Part shown: positions 1 to 20,762 of the stretch, piece after piece
Layout of the letters: every line of letters starts with the position of its first letter
How positions within the stretch are numbered: the first letter of the stretch is position 1
Source of the DNA: Dimorphilus gyrociliatus
Taxonomy: Eukaryota > Animalia > Annelida
Assembly: GCA_904063045.1 (NCBI GenBank)
Contig: CAJFCJ010000014.1
Coordinates: 1,609,643-1,673,642, forward strand
Direction: 5' to 3'
Length of the DNA stretch: 64,000 nt
Notes under the pieces: generated by a model
The model's input: only the letters and a program-made list of their open reading frames with translations
The model's database searches: none
Told to the model about the DNA's origin: nothing
Program-made: the position numbers and the translations under genes

Positions 1-2662
1 AATTCAATCCCTATTCAATAATAATTATGCTTGGCGAGTGTCACACAATGAAGTTAAGATTTACTTGCCTCATCATGGCGTATCTAATCTGAACAAGAAA
101 ACAATAAGAATAGTCTTTGACAGCGCCGCAAAATACAAGATCTATTCCCTGAATTATACACTTCTCACGGGACCTTCCTTACTGTCAAACCAAGCTTACA
201 TCCTTACATTATGGCGAACCCAACCCTATTTCATACTCGCAGACATCCATCAAACAGATGTTTATGAACATATGTGTAGACATAAAACACCAACCCTACT
301 TCAGTTTCATGTACAAAGACCCTAAAAAGGACAATAATATTTTATCTGCCGTCATGACACATCATATATTCGGTGCAGCTAGTTCCCCGTTCATTACTTG
401 TACAGCATTAAATGCCACAATTAAACAAGCAGTCTCATTGAATAGTGAAGAAAAGAAGATTATCTTGAAATCCTTCTACATGGACAACCTTATCTTGGTA
501 GGAGACAATGAGAGACAACTTGAAAATTTAGCCTTCCATCTGCACCAAGAGCTGGCAGCCAAAGGCCTACCCCTAATCAAATACACCACCAACAATGAGT
601 GGATAAGTACTCATTTCATCTTGAACATCAAGCTCATTCAAGAACCCGTCAAGGTCCTAGGAGTGACATACCAAATCGAGCACCTGAACAACACAAAAAA
701 AACATCTTTTTTTATTCTCTCATCACGAAAATCTATGATATTATGGGATTCATCGAACCAATAAAGTTACAGGCAAAAATCCTGATAACCTAGTTTCATG
801 GTCTTAATTGGGATGATACATGTCAAGATCAAGAAAGCCTCATAAAGGTACTGAAGGACATATCAGGCTCAATCTCGAGATACATACCACCTCCTGAAAA
901 TATACATATCTATGCCGACGCCTCAGATATCGCCTATGGTGTGGCAGTATATGGCGTCCACGCCGGAAAGGGCTATCTTTTGGCTTCATCTTCCCGCCTT
1001 TTCTCCTTGCCAAGGTCATCAATCCCACAAGCAAAATTGACATTGCAGTCAATATCTGCTCCATGGAATTCACATTCGAAATATTGGGATAATGGAGTAA
1101 AATGAGATGGACCCTGGCGTGGCTGTTAAGATTTAAATCAAACACGCTGTCCCCCGATCCTGTGATAGAGTAAAAAAATCGAAGCAGCCGAGCAACAATT
1201 ATTCAAACTTGTTCAGACCACTATGCCAATAAACAAATTAATGGATCTGTACTCGCTGCTGGAGGACAAAAATGGCGTCTACATCACGATGGGAAGGCTA
1301 GATGACACAACCGAAAAGAAAAAAGTTATAGTCTATGCTCGTCATCCTATAATCAGTAAGCTGATATACTATACGCATCACGAGATGAAACATGTCTCAT
1401 TAAGAGCCATTTTGGCAAACTTAGTCAATAAATTAAATCTTCTATATGCAATGTCAGGGCTCACGAGTGTTTTAAAAAGGTTTAAATTGTGCACTTCGAG
1501 GAATCACAAGAAACTGGTCCTACAAATGGTTAATTTACCAGAGCCCCGAACTGGAGAGTTTACCAATCTGTTTGAAAACATCACCATGGATTTTACCGGA
1601 CCTATATGCAAAACTATGGAGGGAAACAAAGTTTACCTACTCGTCACCTCTTTCTTGAGATCTAGAGCAGTACAAATTCTACCTACCACTTCCCTCTCAA
1701 CGAAGGTACTAATGACAGAGATCCAAATATTTATGAACAACTGGAGCTGGCCCAAGTCGATCATTTCAGACTCAGCTACAACCTTCAAAAAACTGTCCAA
1801 ATTAATCAACAATCACTACAAAAAACAATCTAAAGTGAAACACATTCTTAGGAAATTTAATTCCCCTCATTCCACTCACAAAATGGAAGTTGTCGAGAGG
1901 ATCATCGGATTAATCAAACCAATGATACAACCGAAAAAAGAAAGAATACCTGCCTCGATTGGGACACTATACATCTCACAATCTCGGCCATCGAGAACCT
2001 GATGAACAGTCCGCCCCATAAGCTTCAGAATCAACGACTTTGGAGAACCAATGACGGTGTCACCAGTGGATTTCATAAAAGTGAACAAATTACCGATAAA
2101 GAATGGAGAGTACGACCACGCTATTGTCACTCGTGAGCGTCAAATTCTGAATGACAAATGTTGCAATGAGTTGTTCAACAGCATTCACAAGAGAACAAAA
2201 TAGCACAAGGACAATTACAAGCCGAATATACATCCCAGACACACCATTCTATACTTTGACCAGAGATCAATATGTAAACTCAAATTAGCGAAAAACACCT
2301 ATAAAATCACCGAACGTACCTTCCAAATCTACACTGGTCACAGTAATATATAGAGAGACGTTAGAGATATAATCCCCGACCTACTAAATGAAACTCTATC
2401 TTTTCCTCTTCCTCTGGCCAGTGTAATCGACGAGCACATCATCTAAATTTGGCAGCAACCCAAATTATCGTTACGTCAATATCCATACGTTTTATACAAT
2501 TTTACAACCAACTGTTCTTATCCAGTTATCTTTTCCTAGTGTATGTGTATTACTTATAACTACCGGTTATATTACCAGTAAAGACTTTAAAACTAAACTT
2601 ACTGTACTGTTAAGTCAATGACATATCAGCGTATTATGTGCGCAACCCACTCAACGACTACA
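1..2662 (+). mobile_element. Degenerate BEL/Pao LTR retrotransposon: pol remnant (RT, RNase H, integrase) plus candidate 3' LTR; 5' end lies outside the window
   Basis: Broken ORFs carry RT motifs (LADI, HIFGAASSPF, FYMDNL), an RNase H-like YADASDIAYG segment near 905-935, and an integrase core (FENITMDFTGP, ISDSATTF, VERIIGLIK). RT-RH-IN order with multiple stops and frameshifts. Confidence 0.85.
2422..2662 (+). repeat. Candidate 3' LTR (241 bp) of the BEL element
   Basis: Begins TGTAATCG and ends CGACTACA (7/8 inverted match, TG...CA ends). Sequence right after 2662 resumes the host Ig6a-Ig6b intron seen in other cassette copies. No clear purine-rich PPT, and the matching 5' LTR is not in the window. 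Confidence 0.55.
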
Positions 2663-2725
2663 TTAATGTATATTTTATGTTAAAATAGAAAAAACACATA
2701 GATACATTTATATGTATATTTATAG

Positions 2726-5700
2726 AAAAAACTAGAGATAGATGGAAACACATTCAAGATCGAAGGAGCTGATAATAAAGAGAAGAATCTAATAATTGAT
2801 GCAAAAAGTAAAAGAATATTTGGTAAATACCAATGTATAGGAGATAATGGATATACTGAAGATGTTTCGACTGAAATACAATTGAAGCACTCGTTTAATC
2901 GTAAGTTACCAAGACGATTGTCTATTTCTTATATAACTTATACAGTAAACAAACAAAAATCGCATAACATATATAGATGACCTGCTACAAGAAATTCAAT
3001 TTCCACCCACAATTATTAACCATCCGGCTCGTCTAAAAGTTTACGCTGGTAGGGAGGATCTTAATATAAATTGTGGAGCGAAAGGTCCTAATGGTGATCT
3101 AGTTGGACCAAGCGGAAAGCTTGATTATGAATGGTACCACAGGAAAAGTGAACAGGATCCATGGGTAAAGATTAACATTATCGGAGAAGCTGGTTGGGCT
3201 TGGACTTCTGAGAACGATAACGGAAATATCAGAATCAAACAGGAAATTGTTTCAGATGATCGGGCCAAATATTCGGGAGAATATCAATGTATTGTGTCTC
3301 TTGACAATCACTATAAAGTTAAATCTAGTATTGGTCTACTTGTCCACTACGGTAAGTTAACAAAAATTACATAAATGTCTTCGTCTATGAGAAATCCTTC
3401 TTTTATTCTAACAGCAATTCCTCTCACAAGTAACACTCCTGTGCATTTGGATATAAATCGACACACGCACTTCATTATTGAACCAAAATATATAAAACTT
3501 GATTGTAATTTAATTGAATGTCAAAATTTTCGTATAAGACCTAAAATTGAAGGCAAACCTGATCCTGGTATCTTCCGCTCTTCTCGAATGGTTTATGATA
3601 GAGAAACTGGTCATTTTATAGTAATGCGAGCTGATTCAGAAGATAATGACAGACGATTTCATATACTTTTTGATTTTATTGAATCAAGTGTAGGTGAAAC
3701 AAATGACCCACGTGATATTAGAATTACAGGCGATCAAAGTAACATCAATAACGATATTATTTATCATACAACAACAAATAATAACAACCAGAACGAATTT
3801 CATCGTTTTTCTAAAGAAGATATTTCATTTACTTGTGCCGTGAAAGGAAAGTAAGTATAAGATAAACTTCAATCTAAATTTCCCAAGATCCTTTTTAAAA
3901 CCTTTACCTTTTTTTTAGCCCCCTTCCCTCTCTAACCTGGTCAAAAGAGAGTGGAAGTATACCACCAAAAGCTGATAGGAGTGAACCATACCGTCTAAAG
4001 ATAGGTATATGTTAAGAAAACATCTAACAGCTAATTTCTGGATAATTTTACATAATCTTTAAAATCAATATCTATTGGTAACCCGATAAAGATGCTCCAT
4101 AAATGATTATTTCTTTATCACCATTCTCTGTTTTGAATTTGACTCAGAGTTAGCATTTACTTTCTCTACTGATAATTAAAGAACTCATTTTTCAATCTAT
4201 TTTCAACTACTGTGTTACAATTAAGAAATATTTCTTAATAGGTGATCTTCAACCTGGCGACTCGGGAGTTTATAAATGCTCCATCGGATCTGGAATTGAA
4301 AAAACATTCTCTCTTAAAGTAGAAGGTTCAGTATTTCAGAAAAATAAGTGTATTTTTTCCACATTAACATGTCTTCTCTTCGAAAATAGATTTCTTCGAT
4401 TTCGAGGATAAACCGGAAAACCAAAATGCTAGTGTTGGTGACACGAATATACAGTGGAAATGTAGAGGAACACCTGGACAGCACAACTATGAATTTAACG
4501 TTAATGGAGAAAAACCTGGTAAATTATAATTTATCTTTTCAAGTTTATAATTCATCATTGAAATCCAACTTTTTCATCATTCAGTTAGTGACTTTTATGT
4601 TGCAAACTACATCATGAATTTGGAGAAGGTAGAGAGAACTCATGAAGGAGTAATTCAATGTAATATCAATAAACCGTCGACAAGGGAAAGTAAAAGTTCA
4701 TCAGCCTACTTTCTGGTCTTTGGTTAGTATATTTTAATGTTAGATAAATGGGATATGTTGATATTTATTCATTTCACATTTGTAGATAAAACAACAATAA
4801 CTGCTAAAAATGAAGCTGAAATTAATGTTACTCACGATATGGATAAGATCAAACTAGAATGTAATGTTTCAGTAGATAATAGATTGCCATTTTCACTACA
4901 CTGGTATAAAGATGGAGTAAGGAATAAGAGATTTTCTCTTAGAATTGGATAGATTAATACAGTATATTAATATATATTTTAAATTATTATAGGAAAAACT
5001 AGAAATAGATGGAAACACATTTAAGATCGAGGGAGCTGATAATAAAGAGAAGAATCTAATAATTGATGCAAAAAGTAAAACTATATTCGGTAAATACCGA
5101 TGTAAAGGAGATAATGGATATTCTGAAGATGTTTCGGCAGAAATAACATTGAAGCCCTCAACTAATCGTAAGTTTCCAAGACGATTGTTTATTTCTTTTA
5201 CAATTTATACATTCTACAAACAAAATCGTATAATATAAAGTGAGCTTCATAAAACAATGGACACCGTAAATTTTGATAGGCCAACTTTTAATTAACGGTT
5301 AATATTGTTTTTTCGCTGTAAATTATTTTTTTTGATCTAAATTTCTATAAAAAAGGGTTATATTCACGTAATATTGAAAAAAATTTACGAAATGATAAAT
5401 TTATGAATATTATAAGCAAAATATTTTTGGTCATTTTCATCAATTATATATTTATTTGGCGGCACAACATATTTATTGGAATAGTCAGTTGACATCCGGT
5501 TTGGCATTCAAATAGATGTAGCAAAAACTTCGAATCTGAGGATGAATTGTGGAAAATAATCAAAAAATGCTCTTATGAACTTATAAAAGAGCAGTCGGAG
5601 TTTTTACCACGTCTATATGATGGAATGGGGCATAGATTCAGGCAATGTATCGAAAAAGAAGGTAGCTATATTAAAAACTAAGAAAAATCAGAATATTTTT

Positions 5701-8316
5701 GTTGGTGTTCAAATTATAATAAAGTGCGGCCAAATAAGAAAAAAAACAACAAAACAGTATATAATATAAACAAAGAAAGTCATGTAAATTTTTACTTAAA
5801 TCGGTTTGAAAGAAAATTATGTATAAATTTCAGTTTCATATAACATTCTATGCAGAAGAAATTAAAAAAATATCTTTTTTCTTAGTGAAAAAAATCTTTA
5901 ATATGTTATCCTACTCAAAATTTGTGGTGTTCCAATTTTTATGAAGTTTGCTTTATTTAGATGTCCTGCTACAAGAAATTCAATTTCCACCCACAATTGT
6001 TAACCATCCGGCTCGTCTAAAAGTTTACGTTGGTAGGGAGGATCTTAATATAAATTGTGGAGCGAAAGGTCCTAATGGTGATCTAGTTGGACCGAGCGGA
6101 AAGCTTGATTATGATTGGTACCACAGGAAAAGTGAACAGGATCCATGGGTAAAGATTAACATTATCGGAGAAGCTGGTTGGGCTTGGACTTCTGAGAACG
6201 ATAACGGAAATATCAGAATCAAACAGGAAATTGTTGCAGATGATCCAGCCAAATATTCGGGAGAGTATCAATGTATAGTGTTTCTTGACAATCGCTATAA
6301 AGTTAAATCTAGTATTGGTCTACTTGTCCACTACGGTAAGTTAACAAAAATTACCTAAATGTCTTCGTCTACGACATATCCTCTTTTTATTCTCACAGCA
6401 ATTCCTCTCACAAGTAATGCTCCTGTTCATTTGAATATAAATCGACTAGCACACTTCATTATTGAGCCAAAATATATAAAACTTGATTGTAATTTAATTG
6501 AATGTCAAAATTTTCGTATAAGACCTAAAATTGAAGGCAATCCCGATCCTGCTATCTTCCGCTCTTCTCGAATGGTTTATGATAGAGAAACTGGTCATTT
6601 TATAGTAATGCGAGCTGATTCAGAAGATAATGACAGACGATTTCATATACTTTTTGATTTTATTGAATCAAGTTCAGGTGAAATAAATCAACCACGCGAT
6701 ATTAGAATTACAAACGATCAAAGTAACATCAATAACGATATTATTTATCACACAACAACAAATAATAACAACCAGAACGAGTTTCATCGTTTTTCTAAAG
6801 AAGATATTGCATTTACTTGTGCCGTAAAAGGAAAGTAAGTATAAGATAAGCTTCAATCCAAATTTCCCAATATCCTTTTTAAAAATTTCATCTTTTTTTA
6901 GCCCCCTTCCCTCTCTAACCTGGTCAAAAGAGAATGGTAATATATCATCAAAGGCTGATAGGAGTGAACCATATCGTCTAAAAATAGGTATATGATAAGC
7001 AAATATCTAACAGCTAATTTCTGGATAATTTTACATAATCTCTAAAATTGATATCTATATATAACCCGATAAAGATGCGCTATAATGATTATTTCTTTAT
7101 CACCATTCTCTGTTTTGAATTTCACTCAGAGTTAACGTCTACTTTCTGTACTGATAATTAAAGAACTCATTTTTCAAGCTATTTCCACCTACTGTGCTAC
7201 AATTAAGAAATATTACTTAATAGGTGATCTTCAACCTGGCGACTCGGGAGTTTACAAATGCTCCATCGGATATGGAATTGAAAAAACATTCTCTCTTAAA
7301 GTAGAAGGTTCAGTATTTCAGAAAAAATAAGTGTATTCTTTCCACATGAACATGTCTTCTCTTCGAAAATAGATTTCTTCGATTTCGAGGATAAACCGGA
7401 AAACCAAAATGCTAGTGTTGGTGACACGAATATACAGTGGAAATGTAGAGGAACACCTGGACAGCACAACTATGAATTTAACGTTAATGGAGAAAAACCT
7501 GGTAAATCATTATTTATCTTTACATGTTAAAAATTTATCATTGAAATCCAACTTTTTCATCATGTAGTTAGTGACTTTTATGTTGCAAACTACATCATGA
7601 ATTTGGAGAAGGTAGAGAGAACTCATGAAGGAGTAATTCAATGTAATATCAATAAACCGTCGACAAGGGAAAGTAAAAGTTCATCAGCCTACTTTCTGGT
7701 CTTTGGTTAGTATATTTTAATGTTAGATAAATGGAATATGTTGATATTTATTCATTTCACATTTGTAGATAAAACAACAATAACTGCTAAAAATGAAGCT
7801 GAAATTAATGTTACTCACGATATGGATAAGATCAAACTAGAATGTAATGTTTCAGTAGATAATAGATTGCCATTTTCACTAGACTGGTATAAAGATGGGG
7901 TAAGGGAATAAGAGATTTTCTCTTAGAATTGGATAGATTAATTTCGTATATTAATAAATTTGTTATGTTATTATAGGAAAAACTAGAAATAGATGGAATC
8001 ACATTCAGGATCGAAGGATCTGACAATAAAGAGAAGAATTTAGTAATTGATGCAAAAAGTAAAAATATATTCGGTAAATACCGATGTAAAGGAGATAATG
8101 GATATACTGAAGATGTTTCGACTGAAACAACATTGAAATTTTTGGATTTGAAGCCCTTAGGTTAGTTTCTATGACGATTGTAAGAACTTCTTATGAGTGT
8201 TTTTTCTTTCAGTTGGTACAGCCACTATAATGTCATTTTCGTGGTTGGTTTTGTTATCTGTAATTTGGAGTAACCATCTTCTCGGTATAATCAATGGAGA
8301 ATTTTTTTTTAATTGA
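2726..8316 (+). CDS. L1-family-derived Ig concatemer with GPI-like C-terminus, 5' partial: Ig6b + two full (Ig1-Ig2-Ig3-Ig4-Ig6) cassettes + hydrophobic tail; 1131 aa in window
   Basis: GT-AG exons: 2726-2900; 2977-3351, 3415-3850, 3919-4004, 4242-4325, 4390-4518, 4585-4722, 4786-4916, 4993-5167; 5961-6335, 6399-6834, 6902-6987, 7224-7307, 7373-7501, 7568-7705, 7769-7899, 7977-8160; 8213-8316. Sum 3396 nt, phases consistent, no internal stops. Last exon encodes VGTATIMSFSWLVLLSVIWSNHLLGIINGEFFFN*. Confidence 0.75.
5236..5955 (+). mobile_element. Internally deleted Tc1/mariner-type DNA transposon in an intron
   Basis: About 45-bp imperfect TIRs (TAAAGTGAGCTTCATAAAACAATGGACACCGTAAATTTTGA... 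versus reverse complement TAAAGCAAACTTCATAAAAATTGGAACACCACAAATTTTGA...) with TA at both ends. 5517-5681 encodes a Tc1-like transposase C-terminus (ELWKIIKKC...LYDGMGHRFRQCIEKEGSYIKN*). Confidence 0.8.
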
Positions 8317-8619
8317 TTGATGGAAAAAGAAAGAGTTTAGTATCTACTAAATGATGTTAATTCCAGAAAAATGTGTTAATCTATTCAGTAACTAAATATT
8401 CGTCGCTTAAAGCTTTTCCTCTTTGACAATGAAATAAACAAACTATATTTAATAATAAAGTAAGATATATTATTTTTTCAATTAGAAAAGCGTTTTTTAA
8501 TTATCAATAAACAATTGATATAATGTTAGCGCACTTTTTGTGTATGAGTTATCATTTGTTACCAACTTTTTTCATTTAATGAATTGATAACGGTGGAATT
8601 TTTTATAATATATCTAATG

Positions 8620-9560
8620 AAGTATAAATAGGAAGAACTTTTTTCGATCAAGATGCAAATAAGAAATCGAAACAATGGAAATGGACTAATCCTAAATACA
8701 ATGGTAACATTATGTATGATCCTTCCAAATTATTATAGAAATTTTATGGAAATAAAGATCATTTACAAGGACAGTGTCGTTGCACTGTATCTATAGATGA
8801 TCTTTATTACGTTAAGTCAATTGTATCGATTTTAATATATCACAGTTAGCTTGCTTTAGATATTCATCTACAATGATGAATAACATTCCATTTTTTTTCA
8901 TATTTTTAGAGATTACAAGAATCAATAATCCTTCAGAAGTTAAGGTTATTACTGGGAATGAACCCTTAGTTATACCGTCGAAATGTGATCATGGAGATCG
9001 TTAGGAAATTGAATGTCAAAATTTCAGTCTAAGGAAAAACTTTACTGATCCAACTTTCCCGGGTACTTTCAATAAGTCAAGAATGGTTATTGATAACTAA
9101 TCAATCCAAATCGTTTATTGTTTAATAAATAATATATAATAAACTTTCTTAAGCTATTCCAACCATTTAATCGTTTTCGGTTAGTTAATTAATAATAATT
9201 CTTTCGCTTTTTCCTTTTCTTCCTTATATTTGTTTTACAGAAAAACCAACTTTTATCCATAAAAAACTAGAGTGAACGTTAAGACAATCGAAACTAGGCT
9301 CTATTGTAAATTTCAGAATGACGAAAGACTTCCTCTTTCTATAACGTGATATAAAAAATAATGTTAGTGTCGTTTTTTAGAATACAGAAAAAAGTAGATT
9401 ACTTAATATCGTTTTGCAGAAACGCTTAATTATCGATAATGATAAATATCGGATCAAAGATTACGAAAAATATAAAAAAAATTTGATAATTAAGGGTCAA
9501 GAAGGTCATTACAAATGTCTAGCTTTAAATGGTTTAAATGGTCTGATGAGATTGATTGAC
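8620..9560 (+). pseudogene. Diverged, decayed L1-like Ig cassette (remnants of Ig1, Ig2, Ig6a, Ig6b)
   Basis: Recognisable homologous fragments: QGQCRCTVSIDDLYYVKS, IECQNFSLR...NKSRMVID, RLYCKFQNDERLPLSIT*YK, KNLIIKGQEGHYKCLALNG. In-frame stops present; Ig3-Ig4 not found. Confidence 0.55.
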
Positions 9561-9991
9561 ATCAACAGCCTCAGGTTTGTAGCAATCATCAACATAAACA
9601 ACATAATCTACCAATATTATCAATATATATAACAATCCTAAATATATTGTTTGCAGTATTAGAACGACCGAAAATCATCTTTTATTGCTTTATAATTGGA
9701 CTCTTATCATTAATTCAATAATATATTATAATTTTTCATACAGAATATAAACATCCTAAATATTTAATAATATTTCTACAGGCCTATTTATACAAAATAT
9801 ATTAAATATTTAATAAAAATTCTAATTAACGTATATTTAATTTAAAAAAGAAATAAACAAGGTAAAAAAAACAAAATAAAGCAAAATAAAAAACGATATA
9901 AACAATAAACACAATTAGATAAATAGAGACCCAACTGACTTTTGAATATTTAATAATTTTAAAGGGTTTAAAAGAAGAGTAAATTATTATT

Positions 9992-11070
9992 ATGGAATTA
10001 ATTAGAGAGAATATATTAAATGAATTACGTACAAGTAATAAATTAATTGAGCAGAATGATTGGACAATATCGGATATTTATAATATAGATAAGACTTATA
10101 GTATATTTGGTCTTATTATAATATTAATTAGTATTGTTTCGTCAACCTATATTAATTTATTCTTAAAGAATATCTTATCTAGAAAAGAATTACATTTTAA
10201 TAAGTAATATAAACTTATTATTTAGTTTGTTTAGTTGTTTGTCATTCTTTATTTTTTAGATTAAAAGAATTTTTAACTTTGGATTATGAGAATTACGATA
10301 ATCATAAAGATTTAATCCAATTTGAATATAATAATGATACATTTCTAACACCTAATAGCAGAAACGACCAGGTTATAAAATTCACTTTCAGGAGGTTTAT
10401 ACTATGCATTGACCGATCGGAAAGTTCCTCAATGATGCTTGATTGTATAAAACATTTATAGAAATACATTCATACATATATATATATTTATATAGATGTA
10501 TAAATACTATGAAAATTCTAGGGTTCTCTTCCAACTTATATAATAGAGATGATGTTGTCCTACTTATACCATATCCTATTGATGAGAAATGTAAATGTTT
10601 AGTAATCGTTGAAATAATTAATATTTAAATATATCATCTCTTCAGTTTCCAATAAATACGATAGATTAATGAAAGAGAAAGAAAAGAATAAAGAACTATT
10701 TCGAGATTATATTCTTAAGTGCCACTTTTACGGAGTAAGTATGGTTTACGGTTAATTATCTTTAATATAGATTTTATAGTTCCATTCATTCTTTAAGATA
10801 AACTCTTTAACTTGCGCTCCGAGTTGTCGTTCGACTCTTAAATTTATTGAAAAAGTTACTAAAAATCAATCTGCTGATATGATAATTATGTGCGATGAAT
10901 GGAATGGAAAGGATAATCAATCTCTGCTTAACGAATTAAGAAAACGTTTAGCAATACCATTGATTATTTTTGGCCCTAATTTCTCAATTGAAAAGAGTAA
11001 TGGTAAAATACCGGCGTTTGAAAAAGATAGCGAAATCAGCTTGAATGATTCAGAAGATGAAAAAGATTAA
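9992..11070 (+). CDS. Putative spliced gene: N-terminal TM segment plus divergent universal-stress-protein (UspA)-like domain
   Basis: Exons about 9992-10203, 10260-10444, 10496-10588, 10646-10734, 10799-11070. Motifs RFILCIDRSESS, DDVVLLIP, ADMIIMC and IPLIIF follow the USP pattern. One splice junction (near 10444/10496) does not phase cleanly, so it may be a pseudogene. Confidence 0.4.
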
Positions 11071-11639: not shown

Positions 11640-12980
11640 GAGAATCAGAGAGACAATTTTTCACAACGATAACCACGCCACCAGATACAATTCTATCCAA
11701 ATTGTTATCCATAATGAACCTAATGGTTGTATTCTAATGATAGCTGATTCAAAGTGATAGTGATAAACGATTTTATATCATATTCAATTATGTTGAATCA
11801 AATATCAGTGAAAGTAATAGCCTAAACGATATTATTATTTTGAAGTTATCAAAATAATGTCGAATACGATGTCATTTACATTATAAATAGGGATAAATGC
11901 GTATGGTTTTATCTAAGGAGATATTCTATTTATTTGTCAAGTAAAAAGGACAGAAAGTGGAACAATTTATTTATGGGCGAAAACTAAGTAAAAGGGCTCA
12001 ACTTTATTTGTAAAATATTCAAGTTCTCTATTCCAGCTTACACGTACAAGAGAAAACGGCGGTATCTCCTCAAGCAGAAGCGACCTCTATCTTCTAAAGA
12101 TAGGTATATATCCGATTCCTAAAACAGACGCTACCGAAACGTAATCAAAGTGAACAGAGTGTTTATGAGATGTTATCGTATGATTTTACAAACTAACAAC
12201 GTCCCTAAGAAATCTCCAGAAGGAATTTCTGCTTGCATGGAAGTATTTGTAATAACCAGTCTTTATATATAATTCTTTGATGTTATTTAATCTTTAAAGT
12301 CAATATCGAAGTATATCTCGATAGAGAGGTGCAATAAACTTACTTGTCTTTATTGGAATGCTATATTCTGAATTTTAATCATTTTTCACATTGAGGTACG
12401 AACTCTTAGTAAACTCATTATTTAAATTGTCTATTAATACCACAACGTCGTCTATAATTGAAAGATTCCATGGCTTGCGGATGCTATTTTAACGTCTAAT
12501 AAACAATTCACGTTTTTTATTAAAGTGGAAGGTACAGTATTTATAAACAAAATGTTTACATGTATATTGTCCAAAGTAGGGATAATGAAAGAAAATCTCA
12601 ACTCTTTCAAACAGAATACTCTAAGTTTAAGAGAGAAGCCGCGTAAGCCTACAATGCAAGTGTCTTTAGGGTAACAATATTAGTTGCTAGCTAAAAACGA
12701 AAATTAGTAAGTATTAGAATGCAATCAAACTGAATAGAGAAATGAAGTAGATAATAGGCTACCATTTTCATTAGATTGATTTAAGGATGGGGTAAGGAAA
12801 TGATAAATTTGTGTGAACAAACAGAGAGCTTAATACGTATCGTGCTTTACCAAAAAAAAACTAAAATAACCGGAAATACATTGGAGATCGAAGGATCTAA
12901 GGACAAAGAACAAAACTTATTGATAGATGCAATGGCTAAAAATAGATTTCTGGGTAAATAGCACAGTAGAGGAAGATGTT
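11640..12980 (+). pseudogene. Second decayed L1-like Ig cassette (Ig2 to Ig6)
   Basis: Collinear DNA remnants of cassette exons: GCTGATTCA...AAACGATTTTATATC, CTAAAGATAGGTAT, TTAAAGTGGAAGGTACAGTATT, TTTTCATTAGATTGATTTAAGGATGGGGTAAGG, AAGATCGAAGGA-like GAGATCGAAGGATCT. Many stops and indels. Confidence 0.6.
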
Positions 12981-14744
12981 TATATCTAAAATATTGCTTT
13001 ATCAATAGAGTTTCGACGCTTCTGTATACATTGATATGTTTATTAAAAGTTTAATTGTATTGAGGTGTACACACAACATTTTCCCTACTTTTGCAGTGGA
13101 TATTTGTCTTAAAAGCTGTAATTCTGATATTTTCTACACCTTATTTACTTCTTAAATATTATTCTTCCTTCTATATAAATCTTTATAATATTCATATATA
13201 AATTCTGCTAATATACTCCGTATAATTCTTTACACAACGCCTATTTAAATCTTTTTATGGAAAGTTCAAAATCTTTAAGACTAAAGATAAATTCTTGCTC
13301 TCTTTTTAAATAATAAATAAACATTATATTTTCTTCTAAACAAATAAGATAACCTAATTTAAATGAATTTTTCAGTATTATTAAACTTTATTCTATATTG
13401 TTATGTTGTATATTGATCGTTATTGTTTCTCTAATGAACATACATTACAACTAGAAGAGTTTAATTTCTTCATTTTTTACTTGCAGTTTGAAAGAGTAAA
13501 ACTAAAATTTGGATTTTTTTTTGATATAATGAATTACCTATTTATTACTGGATTTCTATACAGTTAAGACACACTTAAAAGCCAACTAAAACATAACATC
13601 CGGCTTTATCTTTGTATGACTATAGCTATTATAGGACTAAATACATGGAATATAATTGTTTTCCCTATAAACAGTAATTTTTGGAATTAATATATTTTAT
13701 TTATTGAACGAGATCAGATACTTAAAAACACGAAGAAGCCTATTAAAACAACAAAAAAACAGAGAGGAGGATAAAAAAAGCTAAGGTTAACTTGAATCTG
13801 TTCAACTTTTGATGAAAGCTAATGAAAAAAGTCAGTCCTTCTTTTGTCGATTGTATATCCTAAAGGCTCAAGTAGAATTTACAAAACGTAGTATTAATAT
13901 TATGTTTAATACAATCAATTCGTATAATACTATTAAAGACAAAACGAATAGGTTTCTATTTTCAGTTTAGGTGTACCGAAAGCAAGAAAACAACCAAGAC
14001 ATGTATGGATTACTTTCTATATGCTAAATCGTGTTGCTTTTCCTCTTCCTTTCCTTTTTTTATATCTTTTAAGAATATTTCTAAATAGTTAAACATTTAC
14101 ATAGGCCATTCTCATCTAGTAATAATATCAACATAAAGTTTTTATATATGGAAATATAACAGATATTTCTTCTCTTTTTTTAAAAAAAAGAGGTAGTCTA
14201 TTGTTGAATCAACTGACTATGGTTGTGTTTGCATTATGTTGGTAAAGTCTACGAAAGCCTATAACTTATAATAAAATAATTACTATTTCCGTTTTATCTT
14301 GTTTTTTTTTCATTTTATTTAATTTACAAAGAAAATGAATGTCGGAATGGAAGACGAGAGATAGAAGGAAAGTTGAAAGAAATAGAAGAATAATCTTTAC
14401 AATGGAAAGAAGAGAAGGAAAGGGAGCAAAAAAAGAACTAAATACTTGATACTGAAAAACCTTGTACACTTGAAATTCACGTGAAAAACAATATAAATTT
14501 TTTCAATTTATTTTATAGACTTCTTTATTTAGGTCTTTAGAAAACATTGAATAAGACAGTTAATATTTAGTTGATTTATCGTAAACCAGTATTTATTTAC
14601 GTTCTTTGATATAAAAGCCAAAGTTTTCTATTGTATTCATGTAAAGGAAAGAGTTATAAATTGATAATAAACGATGCTAAAAATGCTAAAATTGTTACAT
14701 AAAAGTTAATGTTGAACATATATTTTATTTATTTCTCCTCAATC

Positions 14745-17739: not shown

Positions 17740-20700
17740 ATGGATAAGTTTTGGTTTATTCTGCCCTTCATCTTCAATTTTTACCTTTCAGGTTTGTCAT
17801 TTTAATACTATTTCTTATATAATTTATACAGTATAAAAACAAAAATCGTATAATATATATAGATGTCCTGCTACAAGAAATTCAATTTCCACCCACAATT
17901 GTTAACCATCCGGCTCGTCTAAAAGTTTACGCTGGTAGGGAGGATCTTAATATAAATTGTGGAGCGAAAGGTCCTAATGGTGATCTAGTTGGACCAAGCG
18001 GAAAGCTTGATTATGAATGGTACCACAGGAAAAGTGAACAGGATCCATGGGTAAAGATTAACATTATCGGAGAAGCTGGTTGGGCTTGGACTTCTGAGAA
18101 CGATAACGGAAATATCAGAATCAAACAGGAAATTGTTTCAGATGATCGGGCCAAATATTCGGGAGAATATCAATGTATTGTGTCTCTTGACAATCACTAT
18201 AAAGTTAAATCTAGTATTGGTCTACTTGTCTACTACGGTAAGTTAACAAAAATTACATAAATGTCTTCGTCTATGAGAAATCCTTCTTTTATTCTAACAG
18301 CAATTCCTCTCACAAGTAACACTCCTGTTCATTTGGATATAAATCGACACACGCACTTCATTATTGAACCAAAATATATAAAACTTGATTGTAATTTAAT
18401 TGAATGTCAAAATTTTCGTATAAGACCTAAAATTGAAGGCAAACCTGATCCTGGTGTCTTCCGCTCTTCTCGAATGGTTTATGATAGAGAAACTGGTCAT
18501 TTTATAGTAATGCGAGCTGATTCAGAAGATCATAACAGACGATTTCATATACTTTTTGATTTTATTGAATCAAGTGTAGGTGAAACAAATGACCCACGTG
18601 ATATTAGAATTACAGGCGATCAAAGTAACATCAATAACGATATTATTTATCATACAACAACAAATAATAACAACCAGAACGAATTTCATCGTTTTTCTAA
18701 AGAAGATATTTCATTTACTTGTGCCGTAAAAGGAAAGTAAGTATTAGATAAGCTTCAATCCAAATTTCCCAAGATCCTTTTTAAAAACTTCACCTTTTTT
18801 TAGCCCCCTTCCCACTCTAACCTGGTCAAAAGAGAATGGTAATATACCATCAAAGGCTGATAGGAGTGAACGATACCGTCTAAAGATAGGTATATATCTC
18901 AAGAATAACTTTTCACTTTTAAGCAAACATCTAACAGCTCTTTTCTGCATAATTTTACATAATCTTTAAAATCGATATCTATATATAACCCGATAAAAAT
19001 GCGCCATAAATGATTATTTCTTTATCAGCATACTCTGTTGTGAATTTCACTCAGAGTTAGCCTCTACTTTCTATACTGATAATTAAAGAACTCATTTTTC
19101 AATCTATTTTCACCTACTGTGCTACAATTAAGAAATATTACATAATAGGTGATCTTCAACCTGGCGACTCGGGAGTTTATAAATGCTCCATCGGATCTGG
19201 AATTGAAAAAACATTCTCTCTTAAAGTAGAAGGTTCAGTATTTCAGAAAAATAAGTGTATTCTTTCCACATGAACATGTCTTCTCTTCGAAAATAGATTT
19301 CTTCGATTTCGAGGATAAACCTGAAAACCAAAATGCTAGTGTTGGTGACACGAATATACAGTGGAAATGTAGAGGCACGCCTGGCCAGCACAACTATGAA
19401 TTTAACGTTAATGGAGAAAAACCTGGTAAATTGTTATTTATCTTTTCAAGTTTATAATTTGTCATTGAAAACAATCTTTTTCATCATCCAGTTAGTGACT
19501 TTTATGTTGCAAACAACATCATGAAGTTGGAGAAGGTAGAGAGAACTCATGAAGGAGTAATTCAATGTAATATCAATAAACCATCGACAAGGGAAAGTAA
19601 AAGTTCATCAGCCTACTTTCTGGTCTTTGGTTAGTATATTTTAATGTTAGATAAATGGATTACGTTTATATTTATTCATTTCACATTTGTAGATAAAACA
19701 ACAATAACTGCTAAAAATGAAGCTGAAATTAATGTTACTCAGGATATGGATGAGGTTAAACTAGAATGTAAAGTTTCAGTAGATGGTAGATTGCCATTTT
19801 CACTAGAGTGGTATAAAGATGGGGTAAGAAAATAAGAGATTTTCTTTTAGAATTGGATAGATTAATACAGTATATTAATATATATTTTATGTTGTTATAG
19901 AAAAAACTAGAGATAGATGGAAACACATTCAAGATCGAAGGAGCTGATAATAAAGAGAAGAATCTAATAATTGATGCAAAAAGTAAAAGTATATTCGGTA
20001 GATACCGATGTAAAGGAGATAATGGATATTCTGAAGATTTTTCGGATGAAATTTTGTTGTATCAAGGTGTTCCAACACCAGCTCGTAAGTTTTCAAGTGA
20101 AATTTATGTGTTTAGTTATCTTTGAGCATGTAATTTTTTTTCAGCTGTTGTGCAAAAAAGTGCATTTCCTTGGTGGATATTTGCAATAATAGCCGGGGCT
20201 CTTATATTCTTTATTGTCGTTTTATGCATTTGTTTATATATACAGGTAAGTTTTTGCTATTAACGTGCGTTGTTTTTTTTTAAGTAGGTCAAATGGCCTT
20301 GTTTTTAAGTTTGTCATATGACACTAGTGATTACGCATTCTTTTAGATAAGAAACTTTGTTTTTAAATGCTTTTTTTAAAAAATCGTATATCTTGCTGAT
20401 TAGTCGAATATTTGAAATTTTGTGATTTGTTTTTTTTCTGTTCTATAGAGAAACAAAGGTGAGGAATACAAAGTCGACTTATTGGAGAGAAAACAAGGAT
20501 TGGATCCTGAAGCTGAATTAAGAGCAGAAGATTTTAAAGAGTATCAAAGACCGTAAGTGTAATCTTTTATATATTTACTATATCGATAAATGTAATCATT
20601 TATTATAGGGATGATTCGAAACCTTTGTATGATGAACCATTCAAGATTCATACATCGGAGGAATCTCTTGAGGAATACGGAGAGGAAATTCGTGAAGATG

Positions 20701-20762
20701 GATCATTTATTGGCGCTTATAAACCTCCGAGAAATAATTATAATAGAGACACAGACGTCTAG
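17740..20762 (+). CDS. L1CAM/neuroglian-family cell adhesion molecule, truncated architecture: signal peptide, 5 Ig, TM, ankyrin-binding tail; 657 aa
   Basis: Exons 17740-17791 (MDKFWFILPFIFNFYLS), 17863-18237, 18301-18736, 18804-18889, 19149-19232, 19297-19425, 19492-19629, 19693-19823, 19901-20084, 20145-20245 (TM FPWWIFAIIAGALIFFIVVLCICLYI), 20449-20552, 20609-20762. Sum 1974 nt in frame. Tail RNKGEEYKV...FKEY...SLEEYG...EDGSFIGAY is the L1-family cytoplasmic signature. Confidence 0.9.

Follow-up and report, generated by a model that had tools for sequence, protein, structure and literature searches.

Dimorphilus gyrociliatus carries a head-to-tail array of exon cassettes coding for immunoglobulin (Ig) domains, and the question raised by this locus is whether the cassettes are spliced into one long adhesion protein or represent the transcribed remains of a failing gene. 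The array occupies positions 2726-8316 of the window, which is the whole stretch of 64,000 nucleotides (nt) analysed here (contig CAJFCJ010000014.1, positions 1,609,643 to 1,673,642 of the forward strand). A first-pass annotation, made from the sequence alone, had described it as an L1-derived five-Ig cassette concatenated into one lineage-specific protein. The structure of the array and its origin are well supported. Tentatively, we favour a young, species-specific array of five-Ig cassettes in a tail-less paralog of a 'mini-L1' adhesion gene, from which some multi-cassette product is made. The intended product would be a membrane-anchored protein with ten or more Ig domains and no cytoplasmic tail, held by a weak transmembrane (TM) segment or a glycosylphosphatidylinositol (GPI) anchor.

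Structure and origin of the cassette array

The window is AT-rich animal DNA with about 30% G+C and introns of 52-260 nt. Direct repeats cover 2720-8210 with 88-97% identity including introns; their start-to-start spacings of 2267 and 2984 nt are unequal because a 705-nt insert lies in the intron between cassettes A and B. The exon map was obtained by reading the three forward frames and checking each boundary one by one. Six public runs were found, of which four (X1, X2, X3 and X6) were compared with 2700-8450, all as Logan contigs; X2, X3 and X6 are RNA-derived, as seen from their GT..AG joints, and X1 is DNA. Such contigs show presence, not absence, their depths are neither comparable measures nor copy numbers, and contig building drops minor paths beside a path about ten-fold deeper. 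The features of the array and its edges are as follows.

2659-2725, forward strand: remnant of intron 7, preceding E0; a local duplication of about 37 nt holds the acceptor
2726-2900, forward strand: E0, a stand-alone exon 8 that codes for the second half of Ig5, with open frame and phase-1 donor
2901-2976, forward strand: junction intron 1, a chimera with about 22 nt akin to the last intron followed by about 53 nt akin to the intron downstream of the signal exon
2977-5167, forward strand: cassette A, with 8 exons (1554 nt) coding for five Ig domains
2977-3351, 3415-3850, 3919-4004, 4242-4325, 4390-4518, 4585-4722, 4786-4916 and 4993-5167, forward strand: exons of cassette A
5168-5960, forward strand: junction intron 2, chimeric at the breakpoint seen in junction intron 1 and interrupted by the transposon (5168-5240, resuming at 5946-5960)
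5241-5945, forward strand: Tc1/mariner-like insert of 705 nt with imperfect terminal inverted repeats, in the A-B intron
5961-8160, forward strand: cassette B; 8 exons, RNA joint 7898->7976, contigs with 0 mismatches over 7976-8158
5961-6335, 6399-6834, 6902-6987, 7224-7307, 7373-7501, 7568-7705, 7769-7899 and 7977-8160, forward strand: exons of cassette B
8161-8212, forward strand: last intron; RNA joint 8158->8211 (cut +2), GT..AG, in X2 and X3
8213-8316, forward strand: terminal exon; Val-Gly-Thr-Ala, a moderately hydrophobic stretch and a stop at 8314-8316; a diverged TM exon, without donor
8317-8466, forward strand: 3' untranslated region (UTR); AATAAA at 8433-8438, RNA contigs stop 10-16 nt past 8450

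Each cassette consists of 8 exons of 375+436+86+84+129+138+131+175 = 1554 nt, equal to 518 codons; exon boundaries, sums and direct repeats all agree with the repeated 518-residue cassette of the first-pass annotation. Acceptors are AG and donors GT throughout E0 and cassettes A and B, and none of these exons contains an in-frame stop. The donors of exons 1-8 are in phases 1, 1, 2, 1, 1, 1, 0 and 1; the phase-1 donor of exon 8 is therefore compatible with the phase-1 acceptor of exon 1, and the junction codon at both exon 8/exon 1 joins is CAT (His). The stop-free copies with phase-1 junctions that had been proposed are thus present, every exon being open. In-frame tandem duplication of an exon cassette is marked by compatible intron phases, uninterrupted reading frames and preserved splice sites, and all three are found here. 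The last copy of exon 8 (exon 8'', 7977-8160) is 9 nt longer than the others and is spliced in phase 1 (8160|8213) to the 104-nt terminal exon. E0 was also considered as an isolated chance open reading frame (ORF), which was rejected, since it is a copy of exon 8 and has a diverged junction intron of its own. The 37 nt at 2659-2695 are 86% identical to the end of intron 7 plus the start of exon 8 (19871-19907) in paralog C, a single-cassette gene of the same family further downstream. Homology to intron 7 ends about 65 nt before E0, counting the local 37-nt duplication, and a retroelement lies beyond.

The junction introns record how the array may have arisen. Their first 22 or so nt match the gene's own last intron at 17-18 of 22 positions (17 for junction intron 1 against 8161-8182), and the remaining 53 or so nt of junction intron 1 match the 3' end of intron 0 of C at 48 of 53. 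The second junction intron repeats the pattern, 5168-5240 being 85% identical to 2901-2973. Since the breakpoint is shared by both junction introns, one join was made and later multiplied. The interiors of the cassettes are more alike: between A and C, intron 1 is 100% identical and exons 1-2 differ at 8 of 811 nt (about 99% identity), and between A and B, exons 5-7 differ at 2 of 398 nt (99.5% identity), so that cassette A is a mosaic, C-like in exons 1-2 and B-like in exons 5-7. E0 shares its first 88 nt without change with exon 8 of C, and its remainder matches no other copy exactly; towards the 3' end, the four exon 8 copies show 5-13 differences in 71 nt (7-18%). Because the junctions are more diverged than the interiors, the array is older than its interiors look. 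The contrast fits a pattern of concerted evolution, probably through gene conversion within the array and with C.

In the proposed course of events, two neighbouring single-cassette paralogs would have been united once by an illegitimate join, which linked a point about 22 nt inside the post-exon-8 intron of the first paralog to a point about 53 nt short of exon 1 in the second. The join would have removed one tail exon, the spacer and one signal exon, with the frame kept since both joined introns were of phase 1. Unequal crossing-over may then have multiplied the unit, and gene conversion among the cassettes of the array, as well as between them and the expressed TM paralog C, would maintain the similarity of their interiors.

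Paralog C, L1 ancestry and the relatives

Paralog C starts about 10 kb downstream of the array, and two dead members of the family lie between them.

17740-20762, forward strand: paralog C, an expressed single-cassette TM form and source of most RNA contigs matching A and B
17740-17791 (signal exon, phase-1 donor), 17863-20084 (cassette), 20145-20245 (TM exon), 20449-20552 and 20609-20762 (cytoplasmic exons), forward strand: exons of paralog C
8640-9721, forward strand: psi1, a dead single-cassette relative with in-frame stops, one of them in its truncated exon 1; hydrophobic terminal exon kept at 9659-9721
11640-12990, forward strand: psi2, a decayed cassette remnant with weak matches to exons 2, 3, 7 and 8 and many stops

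C is a complete, highly expressed 'mini-L1': signal exon, five Ig domains, TM exon and Bravo_FIGEY tail (FIGAY) are all present, and there is no fibronectin type III (FN3) repeat. On Pfam Bravo_FIGEY its last exon reaches 26.1 bits (cut-off 23.8) and the preceding exon 16.8 bits. Judged by this tail, C is a derivative of the L1 family, though it has five Ig domains and no FN3. It is through this near-identical neighbour that the L1 derivation of the array given in the first-pass annotation holds; the ancestry follows from the 95-99% identity of exons 1-7 to C, not from the array's own Ig sequences.

Five Ig units per cassette were counted from Cys...Trp...Tyr-x-Cys motifs and the exon layout. 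Four are canonical by motif reading of the translated frames, and the second lacks the second cysteine. Exon by exon, Pfam returned weak, sub-threshold Ig matches only, because the domains are split between exons; fn3 found no match on any exon of the array or of C. Exon 1 is the sole exon that codes for a whole domain. Its predicted fold is an I-set Ig domain (predicted local distance difference test score, pLDDT, 69.5) with Robo, Dscam, sidekick, contactin, neurofascin and axonin as equally good structural neighbours. A PDB sequence search with exons 1 and 2 gave nothing significant, and a word search with exon 1B gave no match. With exon 1 as query, an exhaustive profile search of 1.84 billion representatives yielded no protein above 50% identity, only two single-exon ORFs from relatives besides generic Ig repeats, some of them bacterial. 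The proposed assignment of the units as Ig1-2-3-4-6 of L1 had to be dropped, exon 1 fitting Robo, Dscam, contactin, neurofascin and sidekick alike, and neither the sequence nor the structure matches of exon 1 single out the L1 Ig domain that the cassette lacks. A literature search on the worm and L1CAM returned L1CAM cancer papers only.

Set against L1 proteins, the cassette has five Ig domains instead of six at the N-terminus, and the three to five FN3 repeats between Ig domains and membrane are missing, exon 8 leading directly to the terminal exon. The intron after the last cassette exon measures 52 nt to the terminal exon in the array and 60 nt to the TM exon in C, which the RNA contigs confirm. 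No cytoplasmic ankyrin-binding tail (Bravo_FIGEY, FIGQY-type motif) occurs in the array, which ends at 8316 without cytoplasmic exons, nor were the four FN3 repeats of contactins found in it.

The terminal exon aligns with the TM exon of C: the acceptors match, and a 24-nt core, coding for Ser-Phe-x-Trp, agrees at 19 of 24 positions when counted by eye. Lacking a donor, it continues to a stop codon and is a diverged, truncated TM exon. Its best Kyte-Doolittle hydropathy (KD) over 19-21 residues is 1.6-1.7, compared with 3.1-3.2 for the TM segment of C, and its best value over 15 residues is 2.1. Gly-Thr-Ala precedes the hydrophobic stretch, no basic residues come after it, and 32 residues follow the Gly. 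The exon could serve as a GPI signal or as a weak TM anchor with a stub. Of the GPI-like tail in the first-pass annotation the hydrophobic end stands, GPI anchoring is putative, and the exon is homologous to the TM exon of C. The tail of the psi1 type, also seen in the relative's contig L002, is a more canonical GPI-like end.

DNA contigs of relatives were reached via the two single-exon ORFs, which are 35% and 44% identical to exon 1. In contigs L001/L002, gelsolin lies upstream, as it does here, followed by one gene in which a signal exon leads into one cassette and then into a terminal exon that is short and strongly hydrophobic; the next gene is the same neighbour as in D. gyrociliatus. 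This intact single-cassette gene (L002 3460-5908) is the ortholog of psi1, and the two terminal exons are identical at 16 of 20 positions (manual count). A further contig, L003, holds a C-like signal exon (81% identical) and then exon 1. No cassette directly following another was seen in the relatives' contigs examined (L001/L002 and L003). Since the relatives have one cassette per gene, the array is specific to the D. gyrociliatus lineage, as had been proposed.

A small gene at 9990-11070 (L002 6065-7304) is conserved in position and sequence in the relative, downstream of the psi1-type Ig gene. On the other side, gelsolin lies about 11 kb upstream, and by our estimate the space between it and the retroelement has room for at most about one more cassette.

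DNA support, transcripts and the state of the array

Contigs of the DNA run X1 match the array with 0 mismatches and at single-copy depth at 5101-5285, 5607-5888, 7913-8105 and 8234-8450. The first runs from exon 8A across the junction intron into the edge of the transposon, and at least one cassette-to-cassette junction is therefore real DNA. X1 also holds features that would favour an assembly artefact, in which near-identical cassettes of separate genes or alleles were stitched into a false tandem: it has only 63% of the words of the stretch, its contigs over cassette exons reach 5-8 times the word depth of the flanks, and some contigs (e.g. 3468-3766 and 5967-6245) show letters or combinations that A, B and C all lack. 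These variants represent either more copies or alleles than were assembled, or graph mosaics. An artefact of this kind is nevertheless improbable: the junction introns are unique chimeras absent from single-cassette genes, their two copies are 85% identical with the transposon in one of them, the 0-mismatch contigs run over the junction and elsewhere, and one RNA contig uses the exon 8A donor beside the insert.

In X2 and X3, which come from two studies, RNA contigs with 0 mismatches lead from the interior of exon 7B through exon 8'' and the terminal exon into the 3' UTR. They end about 25 nt past the AATAAA, which is consistent with a poly(A) site but no proof of one. Their depth is 165 in X2, where C reaches 1200-2280, and 32 in X3, where C reaches 150-306. 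The array is thus transcribed and spliced as predicted at its 3' end, at about one tenth of the level of C, and the splice from the last copy to a short hydrophobic terminal exon with AATAAA at 8433 is confirmed. The abundant cassette RNA was considered as a product of the array and rejected: its mismatches on A (3, 5, 4 and 3 in exons 1, 2, 5 and 6) match the A-C differences exactly, and its loose ends are those of C, namely the signal exon (17760-17789) and the end of exon 8 (20053-20082).

Separately, RNA contigs were seen to enter exon 7 (4783/7766) and exon 8 (4982) from sequences outside the window. Two contig loose ends were traced to C and three others have no match in the window; the latter may belong to further family members, or to unrelated transcripts sharing about 30 A-rich letters.

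Two mobile elements bear on the output of the array, and the second of them adds one feature upstream.

1-2658, forward strand: 3' part of a decayed BEL/Pao-like long terminal repeat (LTR) retroelement, with sub-threshold RVT_1 and Pao peptidase/RNase H matches

The label Tc1/mariner-like for the insert in the A-B intron is suggested by the look of a transposase C-terminus and by the inverted repeats; Pfam gave no match on its 62-residue open stretch. The insert sits a few nt before the acceptor of exon 1B. Its left edge creates an AG at 5239-5240 and with it a cryptic acceptor (5240|5241), 73 nt after the donor of exon 8A. That donor is used: one X2 RNA contig of depth 17 contains the joint 5167->5241 with GT..AG borders. 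Along the transposon, RNA depth in X2 drops from 274 to about 4 ahead of exon 1B, an AATAAA lies within the insert near 5719, and the interior of the insert (5414-5633) is found in RNA with 0 mismatches. The insert may act as a terminal-exon trap. With its competing acceptor and early stop, this transposon compromises the output of the array.

The old retroelement upstream of E0 would compromise the output as well. Its reading frame is broken many times, no second copy occurs in the window, and look-up of two of its ORFs found no record. The signal exon of the array, if there is one, must lie beyond it. The BEL element noted in the first-pass annotation is present, in decayed form; that annotation had laid no stress on its decay, on the 705-nt insert or on the dead remnants psi1 and psi2. 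Only two weak signal-exon candidates are found within the window, 2388-2420 (phase 0) and 5403-5487 (within the transposon, phase 1). The latter is an ATG-led, strongly hydrophobic stretch of 28 residues with a phase-1 GT at 5487 that is in phase with exon 1B.

This candidate leader is the basis of a scheme with two products, in which the upstream cassette or cassettes end in the transposon as a short-tailed, secreted form and B alone is anchored, from a new start such as 5403-5487. In X2 the B-specific 3' contig (depth 165) is far deeper than the contig from exon 8A into the transposon (17), although contig depths are not comparable measures, and the transcribed insert interior is in line with such a start. 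The donor at 5487 (GTTGAC) is poor, however, the X2 RNA contig reads through it unspliced, and no joint 5487->5961 occurs among the RNA contigs, which makes the scheme very improbable.

Selection was assessed from pairwise cassette alignments. Divergence is 3-5% in exons and 7-9% in introns, and gap columns number 0 in 1538 exon columns against 4-24 per pair in introns. The ratio of nonsynonymous to synonymous substitution rates (dN/dS; Nei-Gojobori, exon by exon, with Fisher p) is 0.37 for A-B (p 0.0008), 0.47 for B-C (p 0.012) and 0.49 for A-C (p 0.07). Exons 1-2 of B carry 17 amino-acid changes, of which 1 is at a position conserved in relatives. The exon 8 copies, whose 3' ends escape conversion, give dN/dS of 0.4-0.7, with too few sites and not significantly below 1. 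These values show purifying selection somewhere in the history of the sequences as compared here, not selection on the array itself, and part of the divergence behind them may predate the fusion.

Several observations weigh against our reading of a young array that yields some multi-cassette product. The exon 8 to exon 1 joint (2900->2977 or 5167->5961) was found in none of the X2, X3 and X6 contigs, which C dominates, and the same three sets contain no RNA contig for E0 (2700-2891) or for exons 1-2 of B. The sole transcript seen to leave exon 8A ends in the transposon, where the frame after the joint 5167->5241 continues for 9 codons to a stop. The decayed Pao-like element cuts E0 off from anything upstream, and no convincing signal-peptide exon was found in 2200-7769. 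Both psi1 and psi2, next to the array, are dead. Conversion from the functional C could keep exons 1-7 open without selection on the array, and, in view of the X1 variants, the copy number and exact mosaic may be misassembled. The missing joints and contigs are weak evidence, minor paths being dropped from contigs. Of the single spliced long protein in the first-pass annotation, 3'-end splicing is upheld, and the contig ends are consistent with polyadenylation; no cassette-to-cassette joint was seen in three RNA contig sets.

Many of the same facts suit a transcribed but dying gene, which we regard as a serious possibility. The array would have been cut off from its promoter and signal exon by the retroelement, and its splicing trapped by the transposon; the fusion array either once worked or never did, and its RNA would be non-productive or truncated. 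The trapped joint with its early stop, the fall in depth from 274 to about 4, the AATAAA in the insert, the lack of RNA contigs on E0 and of a good signal exon in the window upstream of the cassettes all agree with this, as does the birth-and-death turnover in the cluster seen in psi1 and psi2. The frames would be open because the array is young and exons 1-7 were overwritten by conversion from C, tracts of which are evident, and for the exon 8 copies that escaped conversion dN/dS does not fall significantly below 1. Decay is opposed by the state of the sequence: all 17 exons, the splice sites, the unconverted 3' halves of exon 8 and the terminal exon are open despite 7-18% divergence, 1.5 kb of exon holds 0 indels where 0.6 kb of intron holds several, and the 3' end is correctly processed at a tenth of the level of a highly expressed gene.

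Unlikely in our view is a functioning gene of variable copy number with its signal exon beyond the retroelement and at least three cassettes, coding for a GPI-anchored protein of at least 15 Ig domains that evolves in concert with C and serves as its tail-less partner or decoy. If true, a newborn recognition or adhesion system would have been caught during domain amplification. Should cassette-to-cassette splicing occur as in the reading we favour, the locus offers a natural model for the birth of multi-domain adhesion proteins and for the change of a TM adhesion molecule into a tail-less, possibly GPI-linked, partner; without it, the locus represents ordinary birth-and-death turnover in a lineage-specific Ig gene cluster.

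Comparison with known systems

The L1 family (L1CAM, neurofascin, NrCAM, CHL1, neuroglian) resembles C in the single-pass TM segment and the Bravo_FIGEY tail (FIGAY), and resembles the cassettes in exon 1, an I-set Ig domain of the neural cell adhesion molecule (CAM) class with neurofascin and contactin among its matches. It differs in having six Ig domains where each cassette has five, and in its FN3 repeats, absent from both C and the array. The array has moreover lost the cytoplasmic tail, its cassette stands in tandem, and the second Ig domain is without the usual second cysteine. We know of no member of the L1 family with tandem cassette repetition.

Contactins and axonin-1 are likewise tail-less, anchored Ig adhesion molecules beside TM relatives, with a hydrophobic C-terminus preceded by small residues. 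Contactins have six Ig domains, four FN3 repeats and a proven GPI anchor, whereas the array has no FN3 and its tail is a truncated TM exon of modest hydrophobicity.

Hemolin of Lepidoptera is described in a passage of PMC9163686 (citing Su et al. 1998) as a lineage-specific, Ig-only derivative with kinship to neural adhesion molecules, its four Ig domains forming a horseshoe. It illustrates that a neural CAM can shed FN3 repeats, TM segment and tail and take on new roles. Hemolin is a single secreted unit of four Ig domains; the array repeats a unit of five and has a hydrophobic end, and no immune role is indicated for it.

Proteins of the titin, obscurin and hemicentin type have grown by tandem duplication of multi-exon phase-1 Ig cassettes, and long proteins of the Ig superfamily in general are thought to grow via in-frame duplication of phase-1 exon blocks. 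To our knowledge, the founding events of such growth are almost never visible. In this very compact genome the parental gene, the chimeric intron, the amplified copies, the conversion tracts and the first transposon hits all lie within 20 kb. The likeness to titin, obscurin and hemicentin consists in symmetrical phase-1 exons that allow an Ig block to be duplicated in frame; the difference is that the event here is recent, with the chimeric intron, the conversion tracts and the parental single-cassette paralog still visible. In-frame amplification of Ig cassettes is known, and what is new is its occurrence in an L1-derived mini-CAM family.

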